Source: Macrostomum lignano (lineage: Eukaryota). From it: a stretch of DNA of 64,000 bases. The notes beneath the pieces were generated by a model. It did not search any database and was not told the origin of the DNA. It saw nothing but the letters and a program-made list of their open reading frames with translations. Positions 1 through 59,046 of this stretch are shown one piece after another. A program made the position numbers and the translations under genes. The stretch covers positions 1 through 64,000 of the forward strand of contig NIVC01001587.1 in the NCBI GenBank assembly GCA_002269645.1, in the 5' to 3' direction. Within the stretch, counting starts at the first letter, position 1, and each line of letters starts with the position of its first letter.

Positions 1-3000
1 CTAAGAAGGCGCTGAGCCCAAGCCAACTAGAGAATGTGGAATTCCCCGAGCTGCCGAAGCTGCCCAAGTTTGTGCGCGTCGTGCTGAAGACGCTGCCAGG
101 CAAGGCGACTAGCGTCAGAGCCGAGTTGAAGGCTTGCCACAAGCCGAAGACTACCGTTAGGACGACACAACAGACGACGACCACGACGGGACGCACAACA
201 CCGAGCACGACAAGCAGGAAGCCGGGATCGCCAGCCGCCGAGAAGCTCACCTTCCCGATGCCGTCGATGCCAGGAGCGACAGGAAAGACAACGACAACGC
301 CGGCGCCTACTACAACAACAAGACGCCCGGCCGTGTGCCTGCGCAAGAGCGTGAAACTGTTTGAGAGCGGCGAGCTGCCCAGCGACGCGCTGACCAAGGC
401 GGAGAAGCTCCCAGAGAAGAAGGAGTTCACACCCAAGGAGCGAAAGGAGGCCCTGCTGCCTAGCGGTAGTGGACTGCCAGTGAAGCGAGGCGGTTCCACC
501 CAGCTCACCTTCCAGGTGGACCGTCTGCCAAAGACTGCCAGCCTGATGAAGGTGGTGCTCAAGAGCAGCACGCCGGACAGTGTTCGCGAGGTGACCGTGT
601 TTGTGGCCGACGAGGACAAGCCAGAGAAGTACGTGCAAGTGAACAGGGAGACGCCGAAGGAGCCTAAGAAGGCGCTGAGCCCAAGCCAACTAGAGAATGT
701 GGAATTCCCCGAGCTGCCGAAGCTGCCCAAGTTTGTGCGCGTCGTGCTGAAGACGCTGCCAGGCAAGGCGACTAGCGTCAGAGCCGAGTTGAAGGCTTGC
801 CACAAGCCGAAGACTACCGTTAGGACGACACAACAGACGACGACCACGACGGGACGCACAACACCGAGCACGACAAGCAGGAAGCCGGGATCGCCAGCCG
901 CCGAGAAGCTCACCTTCCCGATGCCGTCGATGCCAGGAGCGACAGGAAAGACAACGACAACGCCGGCGCCTACTACAACAACAAGACGCCCGGCCGTGTG
1001 CCTGCGCAAGAGCGTGAAACTGTTTGAGAGCGGCGAGCTGCCCAGCGACGCGCTGACCAAGGCGGAGAAGCTCCCAGAGAAGAAGGAGTTCACACCCAAG
1101 GAGCGAAAGGAGGCCCTGCTGCCTAGCGGTAGTGGACTGCCAGTGAAGCGAGGCGGTTCCACCCAGCTCACCTTCCAGGTGGACCGTCTGCCAAAGACTG
1201 CCAGCCTGATGAAGGTGGTGCTCAAGAGCAGCACGCCGGACAGTGTTCGCGAGGTGACCGTGTTTGTGGCCGACGAGGACAAGCCAGAGAAGTACGTGCA
1301 AGTGAACAGGGAGACGCCGAAGGAGCCTAAGAAGGCGCTGAGCCCAAGCCAACTAGAGAATGTGGAATTCCCCGAGCTGCCGAAGCTGCCCAAGTTTGTG
1401 CGCGTCGTGCTGAAGACGCTGCCAGGCAAGGCGACTAGCGTCAGAGCCGAGTTGAAGGCTTGCCACAAGCCGAAGACTACCGTTAGGACGACACAACAGA
1501 CGACGACCACGACGGGACGCACAACACCGAGCACGACAAGCAGGAAGCCGGGATCGCCAGCCGCCGAGAAGCTCACCTTCCCGATGCCGTCGATGCCAGG
1601 AGCGACAGGAAAGACAACGACAACGCCGGCGCCTACTACAACAACAAGACGCCCGGCCGTGTGCCTGCGCAAGAGCGTGAAACTGTTTGAGAGCGGCGAG
1701 CTGCCCAGCGACGCGCTGACCAAGGCGGAGAAGCTCCCAGAGAAGAAGGAGTTCACACCCAAGGAGCGAAAGGAGGCCCTGCTGCCTAGCGGTAGTGGAC
1801 TGCCAGTGAAGCGAGGCGGTTCCACCCAGCTCACCTTCCAGGTGGACCGTCTGCCAAAGACTGCCAGCCTGATGAAGGTGGTGCTCAAGAGCAGCACGCC
1901 GGACAGTGTTCGCGAGGTGACCGTGTTTGTGGCCGACGAGGACAAGCCAGAGAAGTACGTGCAAGTGAACAGGGAGACGCCGAAGGAGCCTAAGAAGGCG
2001 CTGAGCCCAAGCCAACTAGAGAATGTGGAATTCCCCGAGCTGCCGAAGCTGCCCAAGTTTGTGCGCGTCGTGCTGAAGACGCTGCCAGGCAAGGCGACTA
2101 GCGTCAGAGCCGAGTTGAAGGCTTGCCACAAGCCGAAGACTACCGTTAGGACGACACAACAGACGACGACCACGACGGGACGCACAACACCGAGCACGAC
2201 AAGCAGGAAGCCGGGATCGCCAGCCGCCGAGAAGCTCACCTTCCCGATGCCGTCGATGCCAGGAGCGACAGGAAAGACAACGACAACGCCGGCGCCTACT
2301 ACAACAACAAGACGCCCGGCCGTGTGCCTGCGCAAGAGCGTGAAACTGTTTGAGAGCGGCGAGCTGCCCAGCGACGCGCTGACCAAGGCGGAGAAGCTCC
2401 CAGAGAAGAAGGAGTTCACACCCAAGGAGCGAAAGGAGGCCCTGCTGCCTAGCGGTAGTGGACTGCCAGTGAAGCGAGGCGGTTCCACCCAGCTCACCTT
2501 CCAGGTGGACCGTCTGCCAAAGACTGCCAGCCTGATGAAGGTGGTGCTCAAGAGCAGCACGCCGGACAGTGTTCGCGAGGTGACCGTGTTTGTGGCCGAC
2601 GAGGACAAGCCAGAGAAGTACGTGCAAGTGAACAGGGAGACGCCGAAGGAGCCTAAGAAGGCGCTGAGCCCAAGCCAACTAGAGAATGTGGAATTCCCCG
2701 AGCTGCCGAAGCTGCCCAAGTTTGTGCGCGTCGTGCTGAAGACGCTGCCAGGCAAGGCGACTAGCGTCAGAGCCGAGTTGAAGGCTTGCCACAAGCCGAA
2801 GACTACCGTTAGGACGACACAACAGACGACGACCACGACGGGACGCACAACACCGAGCACGACAAGCAGGAAGCCGGGATCGCCAGCCGCCGAGAAGCTC
2901 ACCTTCCCGATGCCGTCGATGCCAGGAGCGACAGGAAAGACAACGACAACGCCGGCGCCTACTACAACAACAAGACGCCCGGCCGTGTGCCTGCGCAAGA

Positions 3001-6000
3001 GCGTGAAACTGTTTGAGAGCGGCGAGCTGCCCAGCGACGCGCTGACCAAGGCGGAGAAGCTCCCAGAGAAGAAGGAGTTCACACCCAAGGAGCGAAAGGA
3101 GGCCCTGCTGCCTAGCGGTAGTGGACTGCCAGTGAAGCGAGGCGGTTCCACCCAGCTCACCTTCCAGGTGGACCGTCTGCCAAAGACTGCCAGCCTGATG
3201 AAGGTGGTGCTCAAGAGCAGCACGCCGGACAGTGTTCGCGAGGTGACCGTGTTTGTGGCCGACGAGGACAAGCCAGAGAAGTACGTGCAAGTGAACAGGG
3301 AGACGCCGAAGGAGCCTAAGAAGGCGCTGAGCCCAAGCCAACTAGAGAATGTGGAATTCCCCGAGCTGCCGAAGCTGCCCAAGTTTGTGCGCGTCGTGCT
3401 GAAGACGCTGCCAGGCAAGGCGACTAGCGTCAGAGCCGAGTTGAAGGCTTGCCACAAGCCGAAGACTACCGTTAGGACGACACAACAGACGACGACCACG
3501 ACGGGACGCACAACACCGAGCACGACAAGCAGGAAGCCGGGATCGCCAGCCGCCGAGAAGCTCACCTTCCCGATGCCGTCGATGCCAGGAGCGACAGGAA
3601 AGACAACGACAACGCCGGCGCCTACTACAACAACAAGACGCCCGGCCGTGTGCCTGCGCAAGAGCGTGAAACTGTTTGAGAGCGGCGAGCTGCCCAGCGA
3701 CGCGCTGACCAAGGCGGAGAAGCTCCCAGAGAAGGAGTTCACACCCAAGGAGCGAAAGGAGGCCCTGCTGCCTAGCGGTAGTGGACTGCCAGTGAAGCGA
3801 GGCGGTTCCACCCAGCTCACCTTCCAGGTGGACCGTCTGCCAAAGACTGCCAGCCTGATGAAGGTGGTGCTCAAGAGCAGCACGCCGGACAGTGTTCGCG
3901 AGGTGACCGTGTTTGTGGCCGACGAGGACAAGCCAGAGAAGTACGTGCAAGTGAACAGGGAGACGCCGAAGGAGCCTAAGAAGGCGCTGAGCCCAAGCCA
4001 ACTAGAGAATGTGGAATTCCCCGAGCTGCCGAAGCTGCCCAAGTTTGTGCGCGTCGTGCTGAAGACGCTGCCAGGCAAGGCGACTAGCGTCAGAGCCGAG
4101 TTGAAGGCTTGCCACAAGCCGAAGACTACCGTTAGGACGACACAACAGACGACGACCACGACGGGACGCACAACACCGAGCACGACAAGCAGGAAGCCGG
4201 GATCGCCAGCCGCCGAGAAGCTCACCTTCCCGATGCCGTCGATGCCAGGAGCGACAGGAAAGACAACGACAACGCCGGCGCCTACTACAACAACAAGACG
4301 CCCGGCCGTGTGCCTGCGCAAGAGCGTGAAACTGTTTGAGAGCGGCGAGCTGCCCAGCGACGCGCTGACCAAGGCGGAGAAGCTCCCAGAGAAGAAGGAG
4401 TTCACACCCAAGGAGCGAAAGGAGGCCCTGCTGCCTAGCGGTAGTGGACTGCCAGTGAAGCGAGGCGGTTCCACCCAGCTCACCTTCCAGGTGGACCGTC
4501 TGCCAAAGACTGCCAGCCTGATGAAGGTGGTGCTCAAGAGCAGCACGCCGGACAGTGTTCGCGAGGTGACCGTGTTTGTGGCCGACGAGGACAAGCCAGA
4601 GAAGTACGTGCAAGTGAACAGGGAGACGCCGAAGGAGCCTAAGAAGGCGCTGAGCCCAAGCCAACTAGAGAATGTGGAATTCCCCGAGCTGCCGAAGCTG
4701 CCCAAGTTTGTGCGCGTCGTGCTGAAGACGCTGCCAGGCAAGGCGACTAGCGTCAGAGCCGAGTTGAAGGCTTGCCACAAGCCGAAGACTACCGTTAGGA
4801 CGACACAACAGACGACGACCACGACGGGACGCACAACACCGAGCACGACAAGCAGGAAGCCGGGATCGCCAGCCGCCGAGAAGCTCACCTTCCCGATGCC
4901 GTCGATGCCAGGAGCGACAGGAAAGACAACGACAACGCCGGCGCCTACTACAACAACAAGACGCCCGGCCGTGTGCCTGCGCAAGAGCGTGAAACTGTTT
5001 GAGAGCGGCGAGCTGCCCAGCGACGCGCTGACCAAGGCGGAGAAGCTCCCAGAGAAGAAGGAGTTCACACCCAAGGAGCGAAAGGAGGCCCTGCTGCCTA
5101 GCGGTAGTGGACTGCCAGTGAAGCGAGGCGGTTCCACCCAGCTCACCTTCCAGGTGGACCGTCTGCCAAAGACTGCCAGCCTGATGAAGGTGGTGCTCAA
5201 GAGCAGCACGCCGGACAGTGTTCGCGAGGTGACCGTGTTTGTGGCCGACGAGGACAAGCCAGAGAAGTACGTGCAAGTGAACAGGGAGACGCCGAAGGAG
5301 CCTAAGAAGGCGCTAAGCCCAAGCCAACTAGAGAATGTGGAATTCCCCGAGCTGCCGAAGCTGCCCAAGTTTGTGCGCGTCGTGCTGAAGACGCTGCCAG
5401 GCAAGGCGACTAGCGTCAGAGCCGAGTTGAAGGCTTGCCACAAGCCGAAGACTACCGTTAGGACGACACAACAGACGACGACCACGACGGGACGCACAAC
5501 ACCGAGCACGACAAGCAGGAAGCCGGGATCGCCAGCCGCCGAGAAGCTCACCTTCCCGATGCCGTCGATGCCAGGAGCGACAGGAAAGACAACGACAACG
5601 CCGGCGCCTACTACAACAACAAGACGCCCGGCCGTGTGCCTGCGCAAGAGCGTGAAACTGTTTGAGAGCGGCGAGCTGCCCAGCGACGCGCTGACCAAGG
5701 CGGAGAAGCTCCCAGAGAAGAAGGAGTTCACACCCAAGGAGCGAAAGGAGGCCCTGCTGCCTAGCGGTAGTGGACTGCCAGTGAAGCGAGGCGGTTCCAC
5801 CCAGCTCACCTTCCAGGTGGACCGTCTGCCAAAGACTGCCAGCCTGATGAAGGTGGTGCTCAAGAGCAGCACGCCGGACAGTGTTCGCGAGGTGACCGTG
5901 TTTGTGGCCGACGAGGACAAGCCAGAGAAGTACGTGCAAGTGAACAGGGAGACGCCGAAGGAGCCTAAGAAGGCGCTGAGCCCAAGCCAACTAGAGAATG

Positions 6001-6043
6001 TGGAATTCCCCGAGCTGCCGAAGCTGCCCAAGTTTGTGCGCGT
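1..6043 (+). repeat. Coding tandem repeat, 663-bp unit (221 aa), ~9.1 copies in window
   Basis: Units recur every 663 bp and are near-identical. Variants I saw: a 3-bp deletion near 3731 (one Lys lost) and a synonymous G>A at 5315. The array diverges at 6044. Confidence 0.98.
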
Positions 6044-9000
6044 TATAGTTCAAATTTTGGCTGAGATGTCCACGAATGTCTCTTTGGATCTATTTTCGTG
6101 TCAGGATGATTTTTATCCATGTATGAATTGCACACACAACGGGACTTCGTACATTGAAGGCTCGATTGTATCGCTTAATGGAGTCAAATGTGATCATCAG
6201 TAAGTGTTTAACGCGACTTGTAGTTTTTGGAGTTAAAGTTTTTGTTTATTGTTTGCATATGAATTTCTTCGTTTTTAGTGTGTGCCGGAAACGATCGTGG
6301 GAGCCTCTTTATGACTGCTCGTCATGGAGTTCCTGGTCAAACTGCTCGTCGGAATGCGATGCCGGATTCAAGACTAGGATGAAGATCTGTCGGTCTAGTT
6401 TCCGGGATCTGATTGCAAGGCAAAATCTGACGTCGTTGGAAAAGTGCTTTAACCAGGTCGAGCGAGAACCGTGTTTTAACAGAAGATGCTCTAGTATGTA
6501 TTTTTTGCAATGCTCTTCTTCGTCACTTGAATTTTCGTTAATCTACTGCAATTTTGTTTTTTTTTCAGAAACTGAGTGCAACCCTGCAGAATGGGGTCCC
6601 TGGAGCCCGTGCTCTGGAGAGTGCAGCACTTTGCTTTCAGAGCGGAAGCGGCAGCCGGGCAGCGCTGTGTTGTCAGAATTTTGCAAGAAAGTTCAACTGC
6701 CAGAATCGCGCTGTGCCCGAAAACGGAAAAGTGCCGTAAGTTTAGAATCTGCTTTTTTATTAGTATTTCCTTCTTTGTATACCGAGACGCATTCCATTGT
6801 GCTTTACTATTCTTTATTTAGTCTTGCTCTTTTAAAGTAGGATTTAAATCATTTTCCTCTTTCAGTGTGCAAGGATCCCAATGCAGCGTGGAACAACTGC
6901 TCAAACCAATGTCCTTTCACATGCGGCCACCTCTCCGAGCAATCTGCGTGTGTCATGACCTCTGCCTGCGTGCCTGGGTGCGCGTGCAAGCCAGGCTATT
7001 ACCTGCAGGACGGCCGCTGCGTACCGCAGTCGCAGTGCCGCTGCCCAGGTCTCACACCAACTACATTGGCGATTAGTACAACTGCACTGACGACTCCCAG
7101 TACTGGAGCCGCTGCCGCCTTGTTTGTGTCTTACTCAAGTCCAAAGGCTCGAATTCGCGGAACCGCCGCTCCTGACAAAATCTCAATGCTGATTCCGGAT
7201 CTCAACCTATTGATCCCCGCACTGCCAACTATCGTAGGAGGTGGAGCTTCAAAGCCAGCCGATGGCGCTGACTTGAAATCAACGTCAGTTAGCGTTGGCG
7301 CTAAAACCAATCCGCCTGCGACTTCCAGTTCGCAAGCGCCACGCATCCGGGGCACGGCAGCGCCGGATCGTGCGTCAATGCTCATCCCCATGCTTCCTGG
7401 CAAACCAGCTGCTACCCCTGTGAAGCCGGCTACGACTGCGACAGCACCGACTCCTACAACACCGGTCAGGATTCGAGGCACTGCAGCGCCAGACGGAGTA
7501 AACCTGCTGATCCCTACGCTATCACTGGGCTCAGCTGCTAATACCACAACTATGGCTCCCAGTACAACTGTTCCAACGACAACTGCGGCGGCATCTGTTA
7601 GCACAGTTGCATCCGTGAATGGAATTCCCGCCGCACCTTCTAACGCTGCAACGCCAGGCGCTTTTGCTCCGGGAGTAACGAGCGGGTCGTCAGGCAGCTT
7701 CACAGTGAAGGGCTTTGTTTCTCCGGCTCAAGGACTTGGTAAAGCCAACACAATGGGTGCGTTCCGAGTAACGTCTCTGCTTAACATGAAACGGCCGCCT
7801 CCACCGCCCCCACCGAGGCCCGGAGGCAACCACGGACGGTTCCAACATTCAGCATTCCGACTGCCGCCCAAGTTCCACCTACCTGCACCATCGGGAGGCA
7901 GGCCGGCTTTCAGGCTGCCGGGCCAGTTTAAACCGCCTCCGGCGTTCCGTCCACCCGGCGGTGGCAGCTTTGGAAAGTTTAATCCTGGCAAGCCAGTTTT
8001 CCGCCTGCCTGGAGCTGGCTCTTTCAATCCGCCGGGAAAGCCAGGCACAAAGAATTCGAGTCCGTCTGTGCCTCACACTCCGGCCGCGGCTAGCCCTGCC
8101 CAACCGGTGACTCCTAAGTCATCAGCATCGACCCCGGCTCCCCCACCAGGCCTAAAGCCAGTCCCATCAGGCCAGCAGGCTTCAGTTGCGCCCACTAAAC
8201 CGACTACAAAGGCGCCAGTGCCGATGTCGAGCCAGGGAACCAGAATTCGTGGCACTGCTGCCGACGATCGCGTGGACCTACGAATTCCAACTCTGCCGAA
8301 CTTGCTGCCTCTGCCAACTTCTCCAAGGACTAAGCTGTTTACAAAGCGCTCAACGCCGTCAACTAGATCCATGCCGAGCATTGGTCCCCATACAAGCGCT
8401 ACCGCTAAGCGAAAACTTACTTCGGCCGCTCCAGTCACTAGCAAGCCTCTACGCCCATCTTTCCCGGGTATTCCGCCAGCGGGACCGCACGCGCCGCCCG
8501 GTGGACAAGGTTCCAGCCCGGCAACGCCTAAGAAGCCGACAACAGTTGTGACAACAACATCGATGGGTACTCGAGCAACTAACAGTTGGGTGATGATTGG
8601 TGGCAGCAACTGTACATGCACATCAGGCAAGACCACCTGCGTTGGAGGGCACGAGGGCTCGCTAGCTGCCTGGTCTACGTGGACAGCGTGGTCCAACTGC
8701 AGCGCCCACTGTGGCCAGGGCAAGCAGTACAGGTTCCGCCAGTGTTCTGGCCCAGCCTGCGTTGGAAACGGTCACGCCAATGAGTCCAGAGCTTGCACCG
8801 GAGTGGACTGCTACTGCGTCTTCAGCCGAGCCAAACTACAGTGGCTGCTAACTGATGATTACTATCACGCCGAGATGTGGGTCGAACGTGACGGAAAACC
8901 AGGCCTGAGCAGTCCTCTGGAAACAGTGAACGACGGCGATAGACTCGAAAGCGGCTCGGTGCTGCAGGTCGGCTGCCTTCGTTGCACCTGCAAGGACGGC

Positions 9001-12000
9001 GGATTTGCCTGCAAACTGCAGCGCTGCGCCAGCGACTGTCAATGGAGCGCCTGGCAGCCGTGGGCCACGTGCAGCGCCACCTGCGGAGGCGGCTTGCAGA
9101 CAAGACTACGGACGATTCACAAGCCAGCTGTAGCCAACGGTGCGCCTTGCCAGGCGAGCGGCTTCACGGACACGCAGGCCTGCAACCTGGATCCATGCCC
9201 TGGCTGCTCCTGGTCCAGCTGGTCACAGTGGAGCAACTGCACCGGCAGCGCTACCAGCGACATCGGAGTGCGAGAACGGCGACGCCAGCCGATCGGCAGC
9301 TGCAAAGAAGCCGACCGCGACCTGCAGCCGTGCCAACTGCGCCCGGCACAGTCCAAATGCAAGCCCGGCCAGCTGCACAGCGCCTGTCACAACGTTACAG
9401 GCTGCGAGGTGGCTTGCTCTGCCGGCGCTAACGCTAGGACCCTCTGCTCACAGACTGACGCGTGCCTAAGTGGCTGCCTGTGCCCCAAGGGTCAAGTGAT
9501 GGGCCCCAATGGACAGTGCGTTGCCACTGACAAGTGCAGATGCTTGCCAAAATCAATCAACTGTTCAAACTGGTAAGTTTCGAGGTCAGTCTTGAGTAAT
9601 ACACACTGAAAACTTCTTGCAGAATAGATGAGGGGCAACATCCCGCACGCCTAGACTAGTCAAGGAGCACTAGTAATATATATTCTGGAAGTCCTTGGCT
9701 GTAGTTTTTACAACGTTTTTAGACACTGCACTTCCTAGGAATGGAAATTTTCAGCTCAAAAGCGTTCTCGAACGACATCGGAGTGCGAGAACGACGACGC
9801 CAACTGATCGGCAGCTGCAACGAAGCCGACCTTTTCGACATGTTTTGATTAGTTCTCGGTCCAGAGTTATAAAGTCGCCCTTCTAATCAAACTTTGCCCA
9901 TCCAATCGAGTAGAAAGTATTTTGAATTATCGCAACTTGAACACCAATAAATTCCACTCCGCAGCTTCAAGCCAGTCTGCCTGAACGGCCAGCCGACCTG
10001 CCTGCCGGACATGAACTGCCAGCGTCTCTACACCGAGTGGTCGGCCTGGTCGGCTTGCTCAGCCGCCTGCGGCGAGGGTCTCAGCCACCGAACTCGCCAG
10101 CTGCTGCAGGAGGGCCGCCGGCCAGCCGGCTGCGGCAAGTCGGACCTGATCGAGACGCGCCACTGCAACGCCCGGCCGTGCGGCTACGCTTGCAAAGATC
10201 GGAATGGCGACTTGTACACCGAGGGACAGGCTATGCCGGCGCTGGACCAGTGCTCCATGTGGTGAGCTCAAGCTCTTCATGCATGTACACCCGTGCATCT
10301 CCTACATGCGTGTCTAATAGTGAGATTCGATCTGGCCTGGATCTCAGCATGCAGTTAGATACAGACGTTCGGAATCATATTTAATCAACTACAAGCCTCA
10401 CCCTTTTAATGTCGGTTGGTGACTTTTAATGTCGGTTGGTGACTTTTAATGTCGGTTGGTGACTTTTAATGTCGGTGGTGACTTCTAATGTTGTCAAGCA
10501 TTCCGCAACCTTTATTGCACGCATTATATTGGAGATTACACTATTTATTTTTTAATACTGTACGCGTATGCGTAATTCCAAACTGTTTCTCGCACAGACG
10601 GCATTATTAACATCCTCAACCAACTGCAGCTTCTGCCGCGCCAATCGCACCGAGTGTGTCAGCAAGGCGAAGGTAGGCGAGCCGGTGCCCGCCCCGGTCT
10701 GGTCGGCCTGGTCAACCTGGAGCTCCTGCGTCAGCGCGGCTGCCAACAACCGACGCCAGGAGCGGCGCCGCCGGTGCGTGCGCATCTGTCCAGACGACCC
10801 CAGGAAGTGCGGAGAGTTCTTCGACAAAGAGGAATCGGTCGAATGGAAGGCTTGCCTTCCCAAAACACCGCGTAAGCACTTTGAAATAACAGTGTTGGCA
10901 CGGGTGGGGGTCGCAACTCTCCCATTTCTACCGCAGCTCAGCGCTGCTTCAAGCGTACTAACCGATATCAACTCAGCTTAACTTGCATGTTCTGGCGACC
11001 TCTCTTCTCCCCAGTTCTGAAACGAGACTGCATTGTGTCGCCGGATTGGATCGAGGGCACCTGCTACGCCAACTGCATGGTCCGCTCCGCTGTGGCCAAA
11101 GGATTCCGCACTCTCTACCGGCGAATCCTTCAGCTGCCGGCGAACGGAGGCGCTCCGTGCCCCGAACTGCGCCGCGAAGACGTGCCGTGCACGAAGACCT
11201 GCCCAGTCGACTGCTCGCAGACCGCCTGGTCTGCCTGGGGCGCCTGCGTCCGCGCCTCCAACTCCGGCTGCTCCGGCCTGCAAGTGCGGTCGCGCGGCGT
11301 CTTAGTGCCGCCCGCCAACGGAGGCCGCGCCTGCGAGGACGCCAAGCAGCTTCGGTCCTGTCTGGCGCCCGGCTGCCAGACCAGCGCCTGTCGGGCTCCA
11401 ATGACGAAGCAGCCGCTACAGCAGAGCCGATGCATCGTCCGCTGCTCTGATCTGGCCAGCGAAGACAAGTGCGCGCCAGTCCAGGCTGCCAACGCTGCGG
11501 CCGTCAATGCAACAGCGTGTGCCTGTCCTGCTGGCCAGTACGAACAGGACGGTCGCTGCGTGGCCAAGCAGGCCTGCCGATGCCGCTGGAACGAGGAACT
11601 GATGGGCCAGCGAAGTCCCGGCACCAGGGAGGAGTTCGCAGCCGGGGAGCGGCTTGTCATGGGCTGCAAGAACTGGTGAGCGGCGGTGAACTCTTCTGCA
11701 CTTACTAAATACCCATTGAAGCACATGTACTACTGTTCAAACAACCAATGTACTGACTGCATAGTGGCCTATCCTGCAATCAGAGAATACAGATGATTGT
11801 AAGGTGGCTTAGACCACTGCCACAAATCAAGACGACATGACAGTCGACCCCTGAACACCCCACCCGGATGCGTATGCGGGCTCACACAAGGTGTACAGTA
11901 GGGGGCGTAGCCTAGCGGTCTAACGCAGCGCTCTGATGTTTCAGCGGCCCAGGCTCGATTCCAAGTCCAGTCATAATAATTTGGGGTTAAATTGGAATCT

Positions 12001-15000
12001 CGGCTTGGCTCTGCTCGTGCAATTAACGGCCAGCTTGAGGGCCAACCTCCAAGGCACAGTGAAGTGTATATGCCTAACGATAAATAAAGTCAGGGCCGCT
12101 GTACACTCCTGTGTGAGTGTGTGCCTGTGCGTATGACTGCGTACGTATCCTTGCGCTTGTGTGCCTGCTCAGGGGATGCTCAGTGCATACTACTAGCACA
12201 CAGCCACCCTTCCTCTGCCTCTAATACAGGGTGTACTGCACCCCTGACATTCTTATCGTCAGGAGTGTACACTTTTTGTAGCTTTTGTGGGTTGCCCTTT
12301 ATTGGCCAGAATAGTGCAGAAAACTCTGGGCCAATATTCGTGCACTAAAGCCCCAAGTTGAGTGTGGCTCACTCACGGAATTTAACCCATGGGGTCGTAT
12401 GGCGCGAGGGTCGGACGCGTTTACCGCTGAGCAGCCCCCCACCCATGTAAAGGTGGCTACCTGATTGCTAATTATCGTTACTCTGCCGGTATTTAACAGC
12501 ACCTGCCAGGACGGAGTGTTCAAGTGCAACCGGCTGTCGAGCTGCTCGGACGAGTGCCACTGGTCCAACTGGCGTCCCGAAGGCAAATGCACCGCCGGCT
12601 GCCGGCTCAAGCCGGGCCTGCAGAAGTTTGTGCGCTCGCCGAGAAACTCGGACTACCTGCCGACTAAGGCCTGCCAGGGACCGTCGGTGAAATACGAGCT
12701 GTGCAGCTCAACTCGAAGCTGCGGTAAGTGTGCAAAAAATATGAAACTTTTGCCTAAATGTCAATCTACAAATGAGTACTAAGTCTCTCTAAACTTTCCG
12801 ATCTCTAAGTTGTGTACCGCACAAAATGCAATAAGCATCAGCCCGGTAGCAGACCCTAAATTTCAGCTGCCGTCATCCAGATTCATAAGCCCTAATCTTT
12901 TCAATTCCTAACTGACAACGCCTTGAAAGCTCAATAAAACAGTTAAGGGTTCAGGGGGGTTCTAGCCTAGTGGTTAGAGCGTCGGACTCACGACTTGAAG
13001 GTCGGGGGTTCGATTCCCGATCCCACTAGGAACAATTTGTGTCCTTAAACAAGGCATTTAACTCTGAATTTCTTCAGTTCACTCAGCTGTAAAATGGTTG
13101 CCAGCATTAGCTGGGGTAATTGAGGGTGCGTGGCGACCCCCCCCCCCAGTCCTTGGACTGAACAGCCGTACGCAGCCTTCAGATGCGCCGCGCAATAGCT
13201 GCGGCTGAGCTGTGGGTTGCACATCTGCCGATTGGGGCAAATGTAATCAAATACGATTTTTTATGGTTATTATTAATTAGTTTATATAACGCTAAGGCGC
13301 TGGGAAGTGTTGCCTCACAGGCGTCGCCCTTCATCCTCACTTCCCCTTCCCGTCCATCCAGACTCGCTGTGCCCCAGCGGACAGCGCTACAACGAATTTG
13401 GCGAGTGCGATGAGCAGTGCTACTCAGCGGGCAGCCTCGGACAGCCGCAGCGTCAGCGCTGCCCAGAGCAGGCCTGCGTCTGCGCGCGCGGTCTGGTGAA
13501 ACGTGGCGACTCGTGCGTGCCCAAATCCGAGTGCTACAAGTGCTCCAGCGGCAATACTACTCTGCCGGTGAGTAGTTAAGTGGTACACGTGTAGGATTTT
13601 AATAATTTTGCTTTCGGAAGTTTGACCCGCTGCTTATATATACTACTAGGAATATCAGCATGTAGCCTATAGGCCAAGCGTCATTCAGAACAAACAATTC
13701 ATTCGCATTTTTCATTTAAACAGGACGGCGGCTACTCCGTGGACTTGGCAGCCTGCCAGATTGTCACCTGCGACAAGGGCAGAACAAGCGCTGTGCCGCT
13801 CAGCGTCGACCAGATGCCGGCCTGCAGTCTGGAGGACGAACGGATCGCCCAGTCAGCGCCAGTAAGCACCTGTTTAGCTGCTTTTCTGCTCGCGTGAATG
13901 TTGCAGTCTGGCTTAGGAGGCAAGTCTTAGTCTCACTCAGGGTGGTACAGTCTCACTCAGGGAGGCACGGTCTCACTCAGGGAGGTACAGTCTCACTCAG
14001 GGAGGTACAGTCTCACTCAGGGTGGTACAGTCTCACTCAGGGAGGTACAGTCTCACTCAGGGTGGTACAGTCTCACTCAGGGAGGCACAGTCTCACTCAG
14101 GGAGGCACAGTCTCACTCAGGGTGGTACAGTCTCACTCAGGGAGGCACAGTCTCACTCAGGGAGGCACAGTCTCACTCAGGGTGGTACAGTCTCACTCAG
14201 GGTGGTACAGTCTCACTCAGGGAGGCACGGTCTCACTCAGGGTGGTACAGTCTCACTCAGGGTGGTACAGTCTCACTCAGGGAGGTACAATCTCACTCAG
14301 AGAGGTACAATCTCACTCAGGGAGGCAGGTCTCACTCAGGGTGGTACAGTCTCACTCAGGGAGTACAATCTCATTCAGGGAGGTACAATCTCACTCAGGG
14401 AGGTACAATTTCACTCAGGGAGGTACAGTCTCACTCAGGGAGGTACAATCTCACTCAGAGAGGTACAATCTCACTCAGAGAGGTACAATCTCATTCAGGG
14501 AGGTACAATCTCACTCAGAGAGGTACAATCTCACTCAGAGAGGTACAATCTCACTCAGGGAGGTACAATCTCATTCAGGGAGGTACAATCTCACTCAGGG
14601 AGGTACAATTTCACTCAGGGAGGTACAGTCTCACTCAGGGAGGTACAATCTCACTCAGAGAGGTACAATCTCACTCAGGGAGGCACAGTCTCACTCAATG
14701 AGGCAGGGTTCCGAGATTTTGTCGATGGTCAAAACCATCCTCATATGTGACACTTTATCACAAAATGTTAGTAATGTGCACTCCATATGCCCAAACAGAA
14801 AGTAGCATAGTATGCATAGAATCTATTTAATGCAACACCACCGTTCGCACCGCCAGAAGGCGAAGGACCCCAACCGCTGCTGCTACCGGGCTTCGGCTTC
14901 CGCCTGCTCGCGCGAGGAGGTGTCAATCTCGAAGTTGGACGACTCCTGCCTGCTGACTTCGCCAATCCGGGTGCCGCACTGCCGCGGCCAGTGTCCGCAG

Positions 15001-16951: not shown

Positions 16952-17655
16952 TTATTCAGCAGAGCCGCCAGGAGCTCGTGCCTTGCTAGACTCAGCCAGG
17001 TGCTGGCCCCTGTCAATCTTGATCATCGGGCTCACGTATTCCGTCAGATCGGCAGCCACGTGAATCTCGTCGTCCTTCTTATCGGTCGAAGCGGTCGGAT
17101 TTTTTTCGATCTTTTCTGTTTTAGCTGAAGAAGATGCGGCCGCAGCAGCCGCAGCCGCTGCTGTCACATCCTCGGAGGCCGCGCCGCTGAGAGCCATGTC
17201 CAAGGGGTTCGAGTACAGAGTGACATCGGCCGCGATCATGAAGTCTGGGGAGTAGAACAGTTGCTTTTGTATTGGAGTGCTTAGAAAGGAGTGCTCAGTC
17301 TGTATGGTAAGGAGTTATGATACAAGCCATGAAATATTAGTACAACAGTTGGGATGGAATGCTCGGAATAGAGTACTTAGAGAGGAGAGTGCCCAGGAAG
17401 GATGGAATGCTCAGAATAGAGTGCTTAGAGAGGAGAGTGCTCAGGCAGGATGAGATGCTTGGAATAGAGTGCTTAGAGAGGAGAGTGCTCAGGCAGGATG
17501 AGATGCTTGGAATAGAGCTCTTAAACATCCTTTCGTGGTCAGCAATCTTAATAAGATATAAAAAATGTAGTCAACCTTGACAACAAAAAAAGAGTTTACT
17601 TAGGCAAGTCCCGCAAAGCAAACACAAAACTACAAGGAAAGCACTCACCGTCCAT
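16952..17655 (-). CDS. Small two-exon orphan protein (99 aa), function unknown
   Basis: Exon 1 17655-17649 (ATG GAC G then GTGAG), exon 2 17244-16952 (acceptor CCCCAG, phase consistent): MDDFMIAADVTLYSNPLDMALSG...VAADLTEYVSPMIK...GGSAE. GC-rich coding-like codons in an AT-rich context; AATAAA overlaps the TAA stop. Confidence 0.6.
17345..17520. repeat. Intronic minisatellite, 48-bp unit
   Basis: GGAATGCTCAGAATAGAGTGCTTAGAGAGGAGAGTGCTCAGGCAGGAT-type units, 3-4 copies. Confidence 0.85.
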
Positions 17656-18257
17656 TGCAACAGCTGCTAGCGCCTATAAAAACTACGCTGATTTTCAGGT
17701 ATACGAGCTAGACAGCGTCTCGGGTAGCAACTAAATTTTGTCTCTTTATATGCGATGGAGAGCGAGGCTGCGAAGAGACGTCAGGTAGGTGGACGGAACG
17801 CTTCTAGATTCCTCTCACCTTGCGTCCTCGTCTTCCCTAACCTCCGCCCGACCCTCCGGCCGATCATTTCTCCCCCCATCGGAGCGTGTTATTTTCGAAG
17901 CGGCCTGGGCGTTGCTAGGGGCAACGTCCCCTTGGACTCGGTACTCGAGTTCAGGCGAGGCAAGACAGGTGCAAAAGAGATGAGAAGAAGCGAGAGGCAG
18001 GCCAGGAAGACTGGAACTGTCTACCCGAATCCCATGGAATATTTGACTCACCTGTCGTGTCTTGGCTTGATTAGGCCGGCTCTACAAGGCGATTCGAGAG
18101 GAACTTCTAATTAACAAAATCCCTAGGGGCCAAAATTCGGCTGGAGCTTTCGAGTGACGAATTTCTGTTTTGGCGCCTTACCGGCCCCTAGCCGGTATAT
18201 ACTTTATACGGCCCCTAAATTTACATAATTTACAAAAATTATGTAAATTTATCTCTG

Positions 18258-20359: not shown

Positions 20360-31574
<11,215 letters not shown>

Positions 31575-40240: not shown

Positions 40241-43200
40241 ATGGCTACCTCCGGTGCGAGTGGGGATGCTGGTGCCAGCGGATCCGGGTAATTTGCTGTT
40301 AGGCATTTTATTTTTATCGATTTATTTTGCCTTTTAGAAGCAGTCTGTTGCATTATTGAACCAATTTCAAATTTTAGATCTGGGCCTAGCTATCAACCAA
40401 ATAAAGGCTGCAACAGACTCAAGCTCAAGTTGATGAGGCAAGTGGTTAATACTCATATTGTATTAGACTGTTAGAGTTAGTAATTGTTCTTTAGGTACAG
40501 CTTCACGCCTTCCACCTCCCCGCCAGGTTGTCGGCATTATGCGCGTCAATGTTGAAAAAGTGATGCAACGCGATGAAAAGATTTCTGACTTGAATGAGCG
40601 AGCTGGTAAGTGGCTAATTTACACTTTCAAAACCTACCGCTGTGTTCCTACCGTTATGTCTTCTCTATGCAATTTTGTTATTACCCTATTTATGATAAAC
40701 ATTGGCGCTAACCTTCACTTACTTTCGCACTACTGGAAGAATATCTTTGGCCCTGTTAATCAATGTTGTCTTTTTCATTTTAATTAGCTGTTTCTTTATT
40801 TGTGTTGTCTTTGCTAATTATTGCGTACCTGCTGTTAACTAGGCCACCCCCTACTTATAGTAGTTTGCAGCTTAAACAGAATCAATCAATGACCAGAAAG
40901 CATCAGTGAGATTCCTCATCTCATCCTGTACCAGAAGGAATAAGTGAGATTCCTCATCTCATTCTGTACCGGAAGGAATTAGTGAGATTCCTCATCTCAT
41001 TCTGTACCGGAAGGAATTAGTGAGATTCCTCATCTCATTCTGTACCAGAAGGAATTAGTGAGATTCCTCATCTCATTCTGTACCGGAAGGAATTAGTGAG
41101 ATTCCTCATCTCATTCTGTACCAGAAGGAATTAGTGAGATTCCTCATCTCATTCTGTACCAGAAGGAATTAGTGAGATTCCTCATCTCATTCTGTACCGG
41201 AAGGAATTAGTGAGATTCCTCATCTCATTCTGTACCAGAAGGAATTAGTGAGATTCCTCATCTCATTCTGTACCAGAAGGAATTTCTGAGATTCCTCATC
41301 TCATCCTGTACCAGAATGGATGAGTCGGTGAGATTTCTCATTTCATCCTGTACCAGAATCAGTGAGATTTCTCATCCTGTCCAAGGCAAAACGAATGCCC
41401 CTTGTCATTTGCACCAAGACTATAATATGTACCAAGACTAAACCTCGCTTACCGGCTGCACCGCACGCCTCAGACGCCCTTCAGGCTGGCGCCTCCCGCT
41501 TTGAAGCCAGCGCCGGCCGTCTAAAACGAAAGTATTGGTGGCAAAACACCAAGGTACTGTGCTGCGAGTTGCCCGGCATGACTTTGAGTCGCTAATGCTG
41601 ATTTAAGAGAGTAGAGAGTTAAATGATTGGCTGGGTTTTTGCGATTTTTTTAAACTACCAATTTATAAATTTTATCCGATCAACTGATTAAATGAGAATC
41701 ATTGTTGACTTCCAACCTGCTTGATTATTCTTGGCTAACACCCTCCTAGATCTTCGAAAATCCGAATTCTTCAGCATCTTAAATTAGAATAAGCAGCCAA
41801 CATCTCATCTCCTCAGTTGCTGGGCCAGCCTCCCGGATCCTCAGTTGCTGGTCCAGCCTCCCAGGATCCTCAGTTGCTGGTCCAGTCTCCCAGATCCTCA
41901 GTTGCTGGTCAGTCTCCCAGATCGTCAGTTGCTGGACCATCCTCTCAGATCCTCAGGTGCTGGTCCATCCTCTCAGATCCTCAGTTGCTGGGCCAGCCTC
42001 CCAGAACCTCAGTTGCTGGTCTAGCCTCCCGGATCCTCAGTTGCTGGTCCAGTCTCCCAGATCCTCAGTTGCTGGGCCAGCCTCGCAGATCCTCAGTTGC
42101 TGGTCCAGTCTCCCAGATCCTCAGTTGCTGGGCCAGCCTCGCAGATCCTCAGTTGCTGGTCCAGCCTCCCAGATCCTCAGTTGCTGGTCCAGCCTCCCAG
42201 GATCCTCAGTTGCTGGTCCAGTCTCCCAGATCCTCAGTTGCTGGTCCAGTCTCCCAGATCGTCAGTTGCTGGGCCAACCTCCCGGATCCTCAGTTGCTGG
42301 TCCAGCCTCCCAGATCCTCAGTTGCTGGTCCAGCCTCCCAGATCCTCAGTTGCTGGTCCAGCCTCCCAGGATCCTCAGTTGCTGGTCCAGTCTCCCAGAT
42401 CCTCAGTTGCTGGTCCAGTCTCCCAGATCGTCAGTTGCTGGGCCAACCTCCCGGATCCTCAGTTGCTGGTCCAGCCTCCCAGATCCTCAGTTGCTGGTCC
42501 AGCCTCCCAGGATCCTCAGTTGCTGGTCCAGTCTCCCAGATCCTCAGTTGCTGGTCCAGTCTCCCAGATCGTCAGTTGCTGGACCATCCTCTCAGATCCT
42601 CAGGTGCTGGTCCATCCTCTCAGATCCTCAGTTGCTGGGCCAGCCTCCCAGAACCTCAGTTGCTGGTCTAGCCTCCCGGATCCTCAGTTGCTGGTCCAGT
42701 CTCCCAGATCCTCAGTTGCTGGGCCAGCCTCGCAGATCCTCAGTTGCTGGTCCAGTCTCCCAGATCCTCAGTTGCTGGGCCAGCCTCGCAGATCCTCAGT
42801 TGCTGGGCCGCCCTTCAGATCCCCAGATTGAGCAACCAACATCGCAGATCCTAAACAGTAGTTAATTCTGTCCTATAATCGAGAAATTGTGTATGATGCA
42901 GCCTTGCAGTACATTGCTTTGCTTCGATTGATTGCATTTTATCAACCATTTATACCTGCAATTAGCATGCTCACTGAACAAACCAATATCAATGGTTATT
43001 CAGCATAAAGTTCTACACTGATTTGCATTGCATTTTGCCACTAACAGACACTCTGCGCATTGGGACGCAACAATTTTCTAATGTTGCCACCAAAATGAAA
43101 CGAAAATACTGCTGGCAGAATGCCAAGGTTGCTCAATGCTTTTTATATACATATAACATGCTTTTGAGTTTTGCTAGTAAAAATTAAGACCAAATTGTGT

Positions 43201-46200
43201 GCTGGGTTATCTTGACAGTAATTACTCGAAAAGTAACTCATCTAACCTTGCGTATATCAATGCACTCGTGCTTCTCAAAAATTGTAACCAGGAATTTTTT
43301 ATTTAACTTTTATCTGTACCCCGGCGCATATATTTTATGTATGACCTGAATTGTCACGGGAAGTTAACACCAGCTAAAGCCCTACAAAATGTAAAAAAGC
43401 ATTGCAGTTATTTTTCACTCTGAAGATTTCACAAAATACAGAAATTTTCTGTTTAGATTGCGTGGGCTGCCAGCCTCCCAGATCCTCAGTTGCTGGGCCA
43501 GTCTCCCGGATCCTCAGTTGCTGGTCCAGTCTCCCAGATCCTCAGTTGCTGGGCCAGCCTCCCAGATCCTCAGTTGCTGGGCCAGCCTCCCAGATCCTCA
43601 GTTGCTGGGCCAGCCTCCCAGATCCTCAGTTGCTGGGCCAGCCTCTCAGATCCTCAGTTGCTGGTCCAGCCTCTCAGATCCTCAGTTACTGGGCCAGCCT
43701 CCCAGATCCTCAGTTGCTGGTCCAGCCTTCCAGATCCTCAGTTGCTGGGCCAGCCTCCCAGATCCTCAGTTACTGGGCCAGCCTCTCAGATCCTCAGTTG
43801 CTGGGCCAGCCTCTCAGATCCTCAGTTGCTGGGCCAGCCTTCCAGATCCTCAGTTGCTGGGCCAGCCTCCCAGATCCTCAGTTGCTGGGCCAGCCTCTCA
43901 GATCCTCAGTTGCTGGGCCAGCCTTCCAGATCCTCAGTTGCTGGGCCAGCCTCCCAGATCCTCAGTTGCTGGGCCAGCCTCCCAGATCCTCAGTTGCTGG
44001 GCCAGCCTCCCAGATCCTCAGTTGCTGGGCCAGCCTCCCAGATCCCCAGTTGCTGGGCCAGCCTCCCAGATCCTCAGTTGCTGGGCCAGCCTCCCAGATC
44101 CCCAGTTGCTGGGCCAGCCTCCCAGATCCTCAGTTGCTGGTCCAGCCTTCCAGATCCTCAGTTGCTGGGCCAGCCTCTCAGATCCCCAGTTGCTGGGCCA
44201 GCCCTCCAGGTCCTCAGTTGCTGGGCCAGCCTCTCAGATCCCCAGTTGCTGGGCCAGCCTCTCAGATCCTCAGTTGCTGGGCCAGCCTCTCAGATCCCCA
44301 GTTGCTGGGCCAGCCTCTCAGATCCTCAGTTGCTGGGCCAGCCTCCCAGATCCTCAGTTGCTGGGCCAGCCTCTCAGATCCCCAGTTGCTGGGCCAGCCT
44401 CTCAGATCCTCAGTTGCTGGGCCAGCCTTCCAGATCCTCAGTTGCTGGGCCAGCCTCCCAGATCCTCAGTTACTGGGCCAGCCTCTCAGATCCTCAGTTG
44501 CTGGGCCAGCCTTCCAGATCCTCAGTTGCTGGGCCAGCCTCCCAGATCCTCAGTTACTGGGCCAGCCTCTCAGATCCTCAGTTGCTGGGCCAGCCTTCCA
44601 GATCCTCAGTTGCTGGGCCAGCCTCTCAGATCCTCAGTTGCTGGGCCACCCTCTCAGATCCTCAGTTACTGGGCCAGCCTCCCAGATCCTCAGTTGCTGG
44701 TCCAGCCTTCCAGATCCTCAGTTGCTGGGCCAGCCTCCCAGATCCTCAGTTACTGGGCCAGCCTCTCAGATCCTCAGTTGCTGGGCCAGCCTCTCAGATC
44801 CTCAGTTGCTGGGCCAGCCTTCCAGATCCTCAGTTGCTGGGCCAGCCTCCCTGATCCTCAGTTGCTGGGCCAGCCTCTCAGATCCTCAGTTGCTGGGCCA
44901 GCCTTCCAGATCCTCAGTTGCTGGGCCAGCCTCTCAGATCCTCAGTTGCTGGGCCAGCCTCCCAAATCCTCAGTTGCTGGGCCAGCCTCCCAGATCCTCA
45001 GTTGCTGGGCCAGCCTCCCAGATCCCCAGTTGCTGGGCCAGCCTCCCAGATCCTCAGTTGCTGGGCCAGCCTTCCAGATCCTCAGTTGCTGGGCCAGCCT
45101 CCCAGATCCTCAGTTACTGGGCCAGCCTCTCAGATCCTCAGTTGCTGGGCCAGCCTTCCAGATCCTCAGTTGCTGGGCCAGCCTCCCAGATCCTCAGTTA
45201 CTGGGCCAGCCTCTCAGATCCTCAGTTGCTGGGCCAGCCTTCCAGATCCTCAGTTGCTGGGCCAGCCTCTCAGATCCTCAGTTGCTGGGCCACCCTCTCA
45301 GATCCTCAGTTACTGGGCCAGCCTCCCAGATCCTCAGTTGCTGGTCCAGCCTCCCAGATCCTCAGTTGCTGGTCCAGCCTCCCAGATCCTCAGTTGCTGG
45401 TCCAGCCTCATGGATCCTCAGTTGCTGGTCCAGCCTCCCAGATCCTCAGTTGCTGGTCTAGCCTCCCGGATCCTCAGTTGCTGGTCCAGTCTCCCAGATC
45501 CTCAGTTGCTGGTCCAGCCTCTCAAATCCTCAGTTGCTGGTCCAGCCTCCCAGATCGTCAGTTGCTGGGCCGGCCACCCTCTCAGATTCTCAGTTGCTGG
45601 TCCAGCCTCTCAAATCCTCAGTCGGTGGACCACCCTCCCAGATCCTCAGTTGCTGGGACGCCCTCCCAAATCCTTAGTTGCTGGGTCAGCCTCCCAGATC
45701 TCCAGTTACTGGGCCAGCCTCTCAGATCCTCAGTTGCTGGGCCAGCCTTCCAGATCCTCAGTTGCTGGGCCAGCCTCCCAGTTCCTCAGTTGCTGGGCCA
45801 GCCTCTCAGATCCTCAGTTGCTGGGCCACCCTCCCAGTTCCTCAGTTGCTGGGCCAGCCTCCCAGTTCCTCAGTTGCTGGGCCAGCCTCCCAGATCCTTA
45901 GTTGCTGGGCCAGCCTCCCAAATCCTCAGTTGCTGGGCCAGTCTCCCAGATCCTCAGTTGCTGGGCCAGCCTCCCAGATCCTCAGTTGCTGGGCCAGCCT
46001 CCCAGATCCTCAGTTGCTGGGCCAGTCTCCCAGATCCTCAGTTGCTGGGCCAGCCTCCCAGATCCTCAGTTGCTGGGCCAGTCTCCCAGATCCTCAGTTG
46101 CTGGGCCAGCCTCCCAGATCCTCAGTTGCTGGGCCAGTCTCCCAGATCCTCAGTTGCTGGGCCAGCCTCCCAGATCCTGATGCACCTGTAAAAAAGCTTT

Positions 46201-47202
46201 CATTAGTCTTAGTGCGAAGAAGGAAAAATGGCATATAACAACAAATCCATCTAAAAACGAACAGAAGTCATGCACTCAGAATTTGCCCCAGTTTGCCAAT
46301 GTTTTTTTCAATGCTCGTTTGTACTAGCATAATCCGGTTTAACGTGCAACAGTGAGAGTTTTCTGACTCGCCAATGCTAAATAACAGTATTTGATTTTTT
46401 TAAAGTTCCAGGCACCTGCGGTACATCTAGTTTAAATTGTTTGTTTCAGATGATGCTCATCATCGGTGTCATTGTGGTTATCATCATACTCATCATAATC
46501 AGTGAGTTCGGCCGGTCCGTTTTTTAGTAGGCTATGACCGAATCGATTATAGTGGGTTATGACCGATCCGATTTCAGTGGGTTATGACCGATCCGACTTC
46601 AGTGGGTTATGACCGATCCGATTTCAGTGGGTTATGACCGATCCGATTTCAGTGGGTTATGACCGATCCGACTTCAGTGGGTTATGACCGATCCAATTTC
46701 AGTGGGTTATGACCGATCCGATTTCAGTGGGTTATGACCGATCCGATTTCAGTGGGTTATGACCGATCCGACTTCAGTGGGTTATGACCGATCCAATTTC
46801 AGTGGGTTATGACCGATCCGATTTCAGTGGGTTATGACCGATCCGACTTCAGTGGGTTATGACCGATCCGATTTCAGTGGGTTATGACCGATCCGATTTC
46901 AGTGGGTTATGACCGATCCGACTTCAGTGGGTTATGACCGATCCAATTTCAGTGGGTTATGACCGATCCGATTTCAGTGGGTTATGACCGATCCGATTTC
47001 AGTGGGTTATGACCGATCCGACTTCAGTGGGTTATGACCGATCCAATTTCAGTGGGTTATGACCGATCCGATTTCAGTGGGTTATGACATTTAACATCAG
47101 TCTACTCAAACTCACCGAAATAAATTTTCAGTCTCGGTGGTCAGCAGCAACAAAGACGGCGGCGGTGGCGGCGGCAGCCCCACATCGGCGCCTGGTCGAT
47201 AG
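40241..47202 (+). CDS. VAMP: Synaptobrevin / VAMP R-SNARE
   Basis: Exons: 40241-40287; exon 2 ending 40437 (GC donor; start 40378 with 1 nt short, or 40407); 40527-40605; 41474-41553 (or 43048-43127); 46450-46501; 47132-47202. Gives [80 protein letters not shown], the synaptobrevin signature with a C-terminal TM helix. Confidence 0.92.
40905..41385. repeat. Intronic minisatellite, 38-bp unit
   Basis: AGTGAGATTCCTCATCTCATTCTGTACCRGAAGGAATT copies. Confidence 0.95.
41810..42830. repeat. 28-bp minisatellite family, array 1
   Basis: CCAGCCTCCCAGATCCTCAGTTGCTGGG variants. Confidence 0.95.
43048..43127 (+). CDS. Alternative (mutually exclusive) VAMP exon 4b
   Basis: CTAACAG acceptor and GTTGCT donor; 80 nt with the same phases as 41474-41553; [27 protein letters not shown] versus [27 protein letters not shown]; no stop. 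Confidence 0.75.
43468..46180. repeat. 28-bp minisatellite family, array 2 (~2.7 kb)
   Basis: Same unit as array 1; explains the spurious 929-aa ORF. Confidence 0.97.
46550..47088. repeat. Intronic minisatellite, 25-bp unit
   Basis: GTGGGTTATGACCGATCCGATTTCA with recurring variants. Confidence 0.95.

Positions 47203-48060: not shown

Positions 48061-59046
<10,986 letters not shown>

Follow-up and report, generated by a model that had tools for sequence, protein, structure and literature searches.

The contig NIVC01001587.1 of the flatworm Macrostomum lignano (assembly GCA_002269645.1), of which positions 1 to 64,000 of the forward strand were analyzed (the window), carries a synaptobrevin (VAMP) gene in which the exon encoding the C-terminal half of the SNARE motif is present in two versions. 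Exons 4a (41474-41553) and 4b (43048-43127), each of 80 nucleotides (nt) and in identical phase, are on the evidence of their sequence and arrangement a genuine tandem exon duplication. The probability that they constitute a functional mutually exclusive pair, such that one gene would give rise to two v-SNAREs of 119 amino acids, is put at about 0.75, and we infer from the genomic sequence that 4b is spliced in. An earlier note on this DNA had described the two exons with their coordinates, phase and peptides, all of which were borne out by the sequence, and had proposed one gene making two v-SNAREs with different fusion kinetics. What stands of that proposal is that the exon encoding layers +4 to +8 with the linker has been duplicated in tandem, that the two copies are incompatible in frame and that 4b is apparently constrained; different fusion kinetics, neuronal versus gland use and palmitoylation are speculation.

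Two versions of exon 4 in one gene

The gene comprises six coding exons (Table 1) and encodes a protein of 119 amino acids with either exon 4. The Pfam profile PF00957 (Synaptobrevin) is matched over positions 5-88 of its 89 with scores of 112.6 bits for the 4a isoform and 104.1 bits for the 4b isoform, the curated cut-off being 26.4 bits. The zero-layer Arg is present, with the exon 3 segment VMQRDEK aligning with LERDQK of VAMP2, and the 4b isoform can be aligned with two full-length structures of VAMP2, 2kog and 3hd7, up to and including the transmembrane helix. With a short N-terminus of 16 residues ahead of the SNARE motif, no longin domain and a C-terminal transmembrane anchor, the predicted gene product is a brevin-type R-SNARE of the synaptobrevin/VAMP family. 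The acceptor of exon 2 was placed at 40407 because in-frame stops lie upstream, and intron 2 (40438-40526, 89 nt) is a GC-AG intron (GAG/GCAAGT ... CAG/G), for which no GT donor would leave the frame open.

Exon 4a has the acceptor ...cgcctcag/AC and exon 4b the acceptor ...cactaacag/AC. Both exons are in the same phase, with the last G of exon 3 supplying the start of the first codon of 4a, and the AG/GT borders of 4b lie at positions exactly homologous to those of 4a. The two exons share 13 of 27 residues (48%) and 43 of 80 nt, with a tblastn E of 5.6e-07 between 4b and 4a (12-kb region) and of 9.5e-06 between 4b and human VAMP2 (whole window), values which indicate that the similarity is not due to chance. 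Exon 4 occurs exactly twice and each other exon of the gene once (tblastn, 12-kb region), and neither decayed further copies of exon 4 nor a second copy of any other exon turned up in a search of the window. Mutually exclusive exons can be predicted from a genome as neighboring internal exons of similar length that keep the splice-site phase and are homologous (PMC3228551), and length, phase, adjacency and homology all agree in 4a and 4b.

As 80 is not a multiple of 3, the two exons are mutually incompatible within one transcript. In keeping with the claim of the earlier note that including both would shift the frame, a transcript with 4a followed by 4b reaches within 4b a premature stop that precedes the last exon junction by 81 nt, and as such should be a substrate of nonsense-mediated decay. 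Likewise, a transcript with neither exon encodes a frameshifted product of 127 amino acids that lacks both the C-terminal SNARE half and the anchor. Exclusivity would therefore be enforced at least by the reading frame, with inclusion of both exons leading to a premature stop and omission of both to loss of the anchor. Of the junctions that the earlier note named, the outer ones, with a donor at 40605 and an acceptor at 46450, agree with the sequence.

The donors of the constitutive exons are strong (GTAAGT, GTGAGT, GCAAGT) and those of both alternative exons weak (GTACTG for 4a, GTTGCT for 4b). Weak donors are usual in regulated exons, and the difference between alternative and constitutive donors would fit a choice of exon made by trans-acting splicing regulators. 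Two GCATG motifs, at 41576-41580 (23 nt downstream of 4a) and at 42965-42969 (83 nt upstream of 4b), are the only ones on the + strand across the 5.8 kb from exon 3 to exon 5, a count which against about 0.9 expected in unique intron sequence is not statistically significant and serves as a lead only. Their layout would be consistent with an Rbfox-type factor that promotes 4a and represses 4b. No Rfam family was found in the window.

Constraint on exon 4b and its counterpart in another species

Exon 4 is taken to correspond to D68-K94 of VAMP2, which covers layers +4 to +8 and the juxtamembrane linker, the layer numbering being the established one of VAMP2, anchored by the structure alignments. 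From +4 to +8 the layers are formed by L, A, F, A, L in 4a and by L, T, F, A, M in 4b, which retains the linker KRKY.WQN.K. The changes at 14 of the 27 residues fall mostly at surface positions, with W89C in addition, and the proportion of differing synonymous sites (pS) between the two exons is 0.74 (saturated), that of non-synonymous sites (pN) being 0.38.

The extent to which neutral decay could leave such a pattern was simulated with 4b drifting at the local base composition and 4a taking synonymous changes only, on symmetric branches from a 4a-like ancestor, the best fit to the identity of 43/80 nt lying at about 0.5-0.6 substitutions per site per branch. Of the runs with that identity, at most 1% keep 13 or more of the 27 residues without a stop, and at most 0.03% reach the observed BLOSUM62 score of 72, these figures omitting the absence of indels and the retained splice-site dinucleotides. 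Between 4b and 4a there is no indel, and all four splice-site dinucleotide bases are intact. The comparisons support the view that 4b shows the features of a coding exon that has been maintained.

The 4b open frame, used in an exhaustive HMMER search, led to an open reading frame of 65 amino acids (P0145) on the ENA contig ERZ22147071:ctg29577l, which was then walked. The contig carries three 80-nt copies of exon 4 (i, ii and iii; L003) with AG/GT borders and one common phase, of which copy iii, reading EYLTMGAQQFEKSAVRMKRKYFWQNAK, is the divergent one and stands downstream of the canonical two, as 4b stands downstream of 4a. An intact 4b-like exon together with canonical copies is thus found in one other species, on ctg29577l only. 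Copies i and ii have a pS of 0.95 with just 3 residues different, which indicates strong constraint on each of them.

Copy iii and 4b are each the best match of the other (52/80 nt and a pN of 0.26, against 40-44/80 to the canonical copies), while 4a pairs with copy ii (56/80 nt, 23/27 residues, a pN of 0.11 and a pS of about 1), synonymous sites between the window gene and ctg29577l being saturated. The sites informative for the quartet are divided 8 : 1 : 2 in favor of grouping 4a with ii and 4b with iii, with a hand-calculated binomial p of about 0.01. Gln at position 8, Met at +8, a hydrophobic residue at position 5 and Ala at position 26 are common to the two divergent exons, as is the loss of the first Trp. 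The intron flanks of 4b and copy iii were compared and no conservation was found. It had been suggested in the earlier note that the change from WW to CW could add a palmitoylation site; the Cys is present in 4b (KRKYCWQN) but copy iii has Phe in its place (KRKYFWQN), which weakens the idea. As far as these predicted peptides go, the feature common to the divergent exons is loss of the first Trp and not gain of Cys.

The cluster on ctg29577l resembles that of the window gene in family, in the 80-nt length, phase and AG/GT borders of the exons and in its order, with the canonical version upstream and the divergent version beside the transmembrane exons. It differs in having three copies of exon 4 rather than two and two alternative 52-nt transmembrane exons, and it too is genomic only. 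The transmembrane exons, MMLILGGIVAVIIIIII and MWIILIAVILVIIIIIV, follow the exon-4 copies (L002, 11248-11299 and 13157-13208) with consensus AG and GTAAGT/GTGAGT sites, and form a second frame-exclusive cluster in the gene with three copies of exon 4. The large open reading frames in the intron of this gene (L002/L003) had no Pfam match.

A number of observations weigh against 4a and 4b being a functional pair, and several of them would be accounted for if 4b were a silent relic, a duplicated exon no longer, or never, included in productive mRNA. The donor of 4b (AAG/GTTGCT) is poor, and no meaningful docking/selector RNA pairing or inverted repeats between the introns were found. Four residues otherwise invariant among the synaptobrevins compared are altered in 4b (A69T, A74T, E78S and W89C in VAMP2 numbering), and the differences by codon position (11/9/17) show a skew which alone is not significant, 80 nt giving little power. 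In protein collections there was no product of the source species for either isoform, the best matches to the protein of the 4b isoform were arthropod and mollusc VAMPs at no more than 69% identity, a 4b-centered query returned no candidate, no annotated protein has a 4b-like segment, and none was seen in searchable transcript collections. A recent death of 4b would be compatible with the simulations, given the branch symmetry and ancestor that they assume. The grouping of 4b with copy iii depends on few sites, mostly non-synonymous, so that convergence is possible, and exons 1-3 of the gene on ctg29577l lie beyond the contig end.

Even so, a relic is unlikely. Simulated neutral decay rarely yields the protein similarity retained by 4b (p at most 0.01), the exon is intact in length, in frame and at both splice sites, and exchanging 4a for 4b costs just 8.5 bits of Pfam score. 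The weak donor is a property of 4a too, and an intact divergent exon occupies the same relative place in ctg29577l despite saturated synonymous sites.

It is very unlikely that 4b acts mainly as a poison exon, whose inclusion after 4a would lower the amount of synaptobrevin through nonsense-mediated decay. Regulated unproductive splicing is common, and the stop within 4b, at its distance from the last exon junction, is what such a role would call for. The constraint on 4b, seen in the layers and in KRKY.WQN.K, sits however in the frame that is used only if 4a is skipped, which would be needless for a poison exon, and the three copies on ctg29577l are all in the same productive phase. Marginally less probable still is that the pair is not native, the island around 4b being an inserted piece of a paralogous VAMP gene, which could explain an inherited signature of constraint, or an assembly mis-join in repeats, for although the same 28-bp satellite flanks the island on both sides in the same orientation and nearly continuous register (the left block ending at about phase 3 and the right starting at about phase 4-5), such continuity has about a 7% expectation by chance, both edges are degenerate rather than sharp, as at old array ends, the satellite occurs elsewhere (Table 1), and the single long-read contig ctg29577l has the order canonical-divergent-transmembrane without this satellite.

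Related exon duplications and the predicted role of the 4b isoform

A literature search turned up no account of mutually exclusive exons in the SNARE motif of a VAMP, nor of such an exon pair in any VAMP; the earlier note knew of none for a flatworm VAMP. The closest described case is that of vertebrate SNAP-25, in which a tandem duplicated exon (5a/5b) undergoes mutually exclusive splicing to give isoforms differing by a few residues in the region of the SNARE motif and membrane attachment (PMC2581893). The likeness lies in a duplicated exon within a SNARE gene (PMC2581893). SNAP-25 is however a Qbc-SNARE with fewer differing positions and with exon usage shown experimentally, whereas 4a and 4b belong to an R-SNARE, differ at more than half of their residues and have their usage deduced from sequence. 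In addition, the segment exchanged by 4a and 4b, unlike that of the SNAP-25 pair, is the C-terminal zippering half with the linker to the transmembrane helix. Exon 13A/13B of Drosophila tomosyn was considered as a further SNARE-motif exon swap and rejected, the exon encoding a WD40 loop.

Vertebrates have several brevin-type v-SNAREs, VAMP1, VAMP2 and VAMP3, whose core is the same and whose C-terminal regions vary slightly. This diversity arose by whole-gene duplication together with alternative last exons of VAMP1 and not by an internal exon swap, and by analogy the vertebrate paralogues and 4a/4b may reach the same functional end by different routes.

Tandem copies of synaptobrevin exons are found in other animals. 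In the isopod Armadillidium vulgare (L005) there are two tandem 79-nt copies of exon 3 (13776-13853 and 14133-14210) with a single exon 4, and in the spider Trichonephila clavipes (L007) two 79-nt copies of exon 3 (17326-17403 and 17640-17717), again with a single exon 4, are accompanied by two 52-nt transmembrane exons (22070-22120 and 22338-22388). The peptides of the arthropod exon-3 copies include VVDIMRTNVE. In a sea cucumber each synaptobrevin exon is single, and exon 4 and the transmembrane exon are fused into one. In the public gene models P0001, P0003, P0004, P0005, P0011 and P0020 both copies of exon 3 are joined in one protein, a concatenation which looks like mis-annotation.

The length and phase of the 79-nt exon 3 of the window gene recur in isopod and spider and those of the 52-nt exon 5 in ctg29577l and spider, and on these comparisons the 79/80/52-nt exon architecture is common to protostomes. 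As none of the three lengths is a multiple of three, a tandem copy is frame-exclusive from the outset, and the copies in isopod, spider and ctg29577l mean that duplicated frame-exclusive exons recur in the synaptobrevin gene. The arthropod genes are like the window gene in this layout and in having tandem copies identical in length and phase, and unlike it in that the duplicated modules are exon 3 and the transmembrane helix and not exon 4. As read from the exon layouts, different lineages duplicated different synaptobrevin modules, and the arthropod cases are independent events.

A wider reading, advanced tentatively as somewhat less probable than its opposite, is that 4b represents an old and conserved second version of the membrane-proximal SNARE half in protostomes, spliced exclusively, predating the split between the window gene and ctg29577l and defining a class of v-SNARE that differs in function yet comes from one and the same gene. 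This version would be marked by Met at +8, by Gln at VAMP2 position 75 and by the lack of Trp89, and would form one module in a larger system of swappable exons, in which the N-terminal half, the C-terminal half and the transmembrane helix are exchanged in lineage-specific combinations.

In SNARE zippering the final force reaches the vesicle membrane through the C-terminal half of synaptobrevin and its Trp-rich linker, which have been studied mainly via artificial mutants. If 4a and 4b are a functional pair, both isoforms would share the N-terminal SNARE half, the zero-layer Arg and the transmembrane anchor. Since 4b keeps the hydrophobic core, its product should still zipper with Q-SNAREs, and because surface residues and the first interfacial Trp are changed the 4b isoform is expected to have altered C-terminal assembly, membrane coupling, or preference for partners or regulators. 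The pair would then be a natural, selected counterpart of such mutants, an evolved "mutant" of a 27-residue module in which the core is kept and +5, +8, the surface and Trp89 are changed, and fusion, optical-tweezer and regulator-binding assays would allow the two forms to be set side by side. In a transgenic flatworm model, knock-down of single exons would make the pair a genetic handle on whether secretory cell types differ in how they tune fusion through the v-SNARE. Annotators should expect clusters of 79-, 80- and 52-nt exons in synaptobrevin genes, as several public models wrongly concatenate the copies.

Gene features and surroundings in the window

Table 1. Coding exons of the synaptobrevin gene and blocks of the 28-bp satellite in and beside it. 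Positions are those of the window; a slash in a splice site marks the exon border. TRF, Tandem Repeats Finder.
Feature	Positions	Strand	Basis
Synaptobrevin/VAMP gene, six coding exons	40241-47202	+	tblastn with human VAMP2, then sequence reading
Exon 1: ATG + 15 codons + 2 nt (start of G), donor CGG/gtaatt	40241-40287	+	sequence; phase fits exon 2
Exon 2: 31 nt, donor GAG/gcaagt	40407-40437	+	tblastn to VAMP2
Exon 3: 79 nt, N-terminal half of SNARE motif with zero-layer Arg, donor CTG/gtaagt	40527-40605	+	
Exon 4a: 80 nt, canonical layers +4 to +8 and KRKYWW linker, donor AAG/gtactg	41474-41553	+	
28-bp satellite TCCTCAGTTGCTGGTCCAGCCTCCCAGA, intron between 4a and 4b, right edge degenerate	41810-42852	.	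TRF, sequence, register
AT-rich unique island, about 600 bp, containing 4b, between satellite blocks	42853-43452	+	
Exon 4b: 80 nt, divergent, T at +5, M at +8, Cys for first Trp, donor AAG/gttgct	43048-43127	+	
Same-orientation 28-bp satellite TCCTCAGTTGCTGGTCCAGCCTCCCAGA, most of intron between 4b and exon 5	43453-46178	.	TRF
Exon 5: 52 nt, transmembrane helix, 17 residues, donor TCA/gtgagt	46450-46501	+	
Exon 6, coding part: lumenal tail, 23 residues, stop TAG at 47200-47202	47132-47202	+	
28-bp satellite TCCTCAGTTGCTGGTCCAGCCTCCCAGA, separate array	48231-48518		TRF

The window is unusually dense in short-period satellites, with 27 TRF rows at a score of at least 200. The two 28-bp blocks beside the 4b island may stem from an insertion that split one array or from two separate seeds. 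Further arrays lie inside the introns of the VAMP gene, in intron 3 (40892-41358, 38-bp unit) and in intron 5 (46522-47088, 25-bp unit), and an (AACT)n tract of 1 kb stands at 57766-58743.

An intermediate-filament gene at 53096-57752 (- strand) has its best named match in M. lignano and is colinear with the M. lignano contig NIVC01000045.1 (L001), with 76-86% nucleotide identity in exons, which would fit a diverged paralogous region or DNA of a macrostomid flatworm related to the sequenced M. lignano. That contig is colinear with the window over 53.2-59.0 kb, after which the next conserved block corresponds to about 12.1 kb of the window; the VAMP gene is absent from the NIVC01000045.1 locus, as is the stretch of about 41 kb of the window that contains it. 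Possible explanations are that the region was rearranged, that the stretch was lost from a duplicated region, or that the species differ.

At the start of the window an open frame of 2055 amino acids (36-6203) is made up of about nine nearly identical 663-bp repeats, Thr/Pro-rich and mucin-like, with no Pfam match. Downstream of it, large open frames at 6865-9576 and 10987-11679 encode TIL and thrombospondin type 1 (spondin-like) domains, and from this content the open frames across 36-11679 are probably one large secreted gene of SCO-spondin/mucin-like type.

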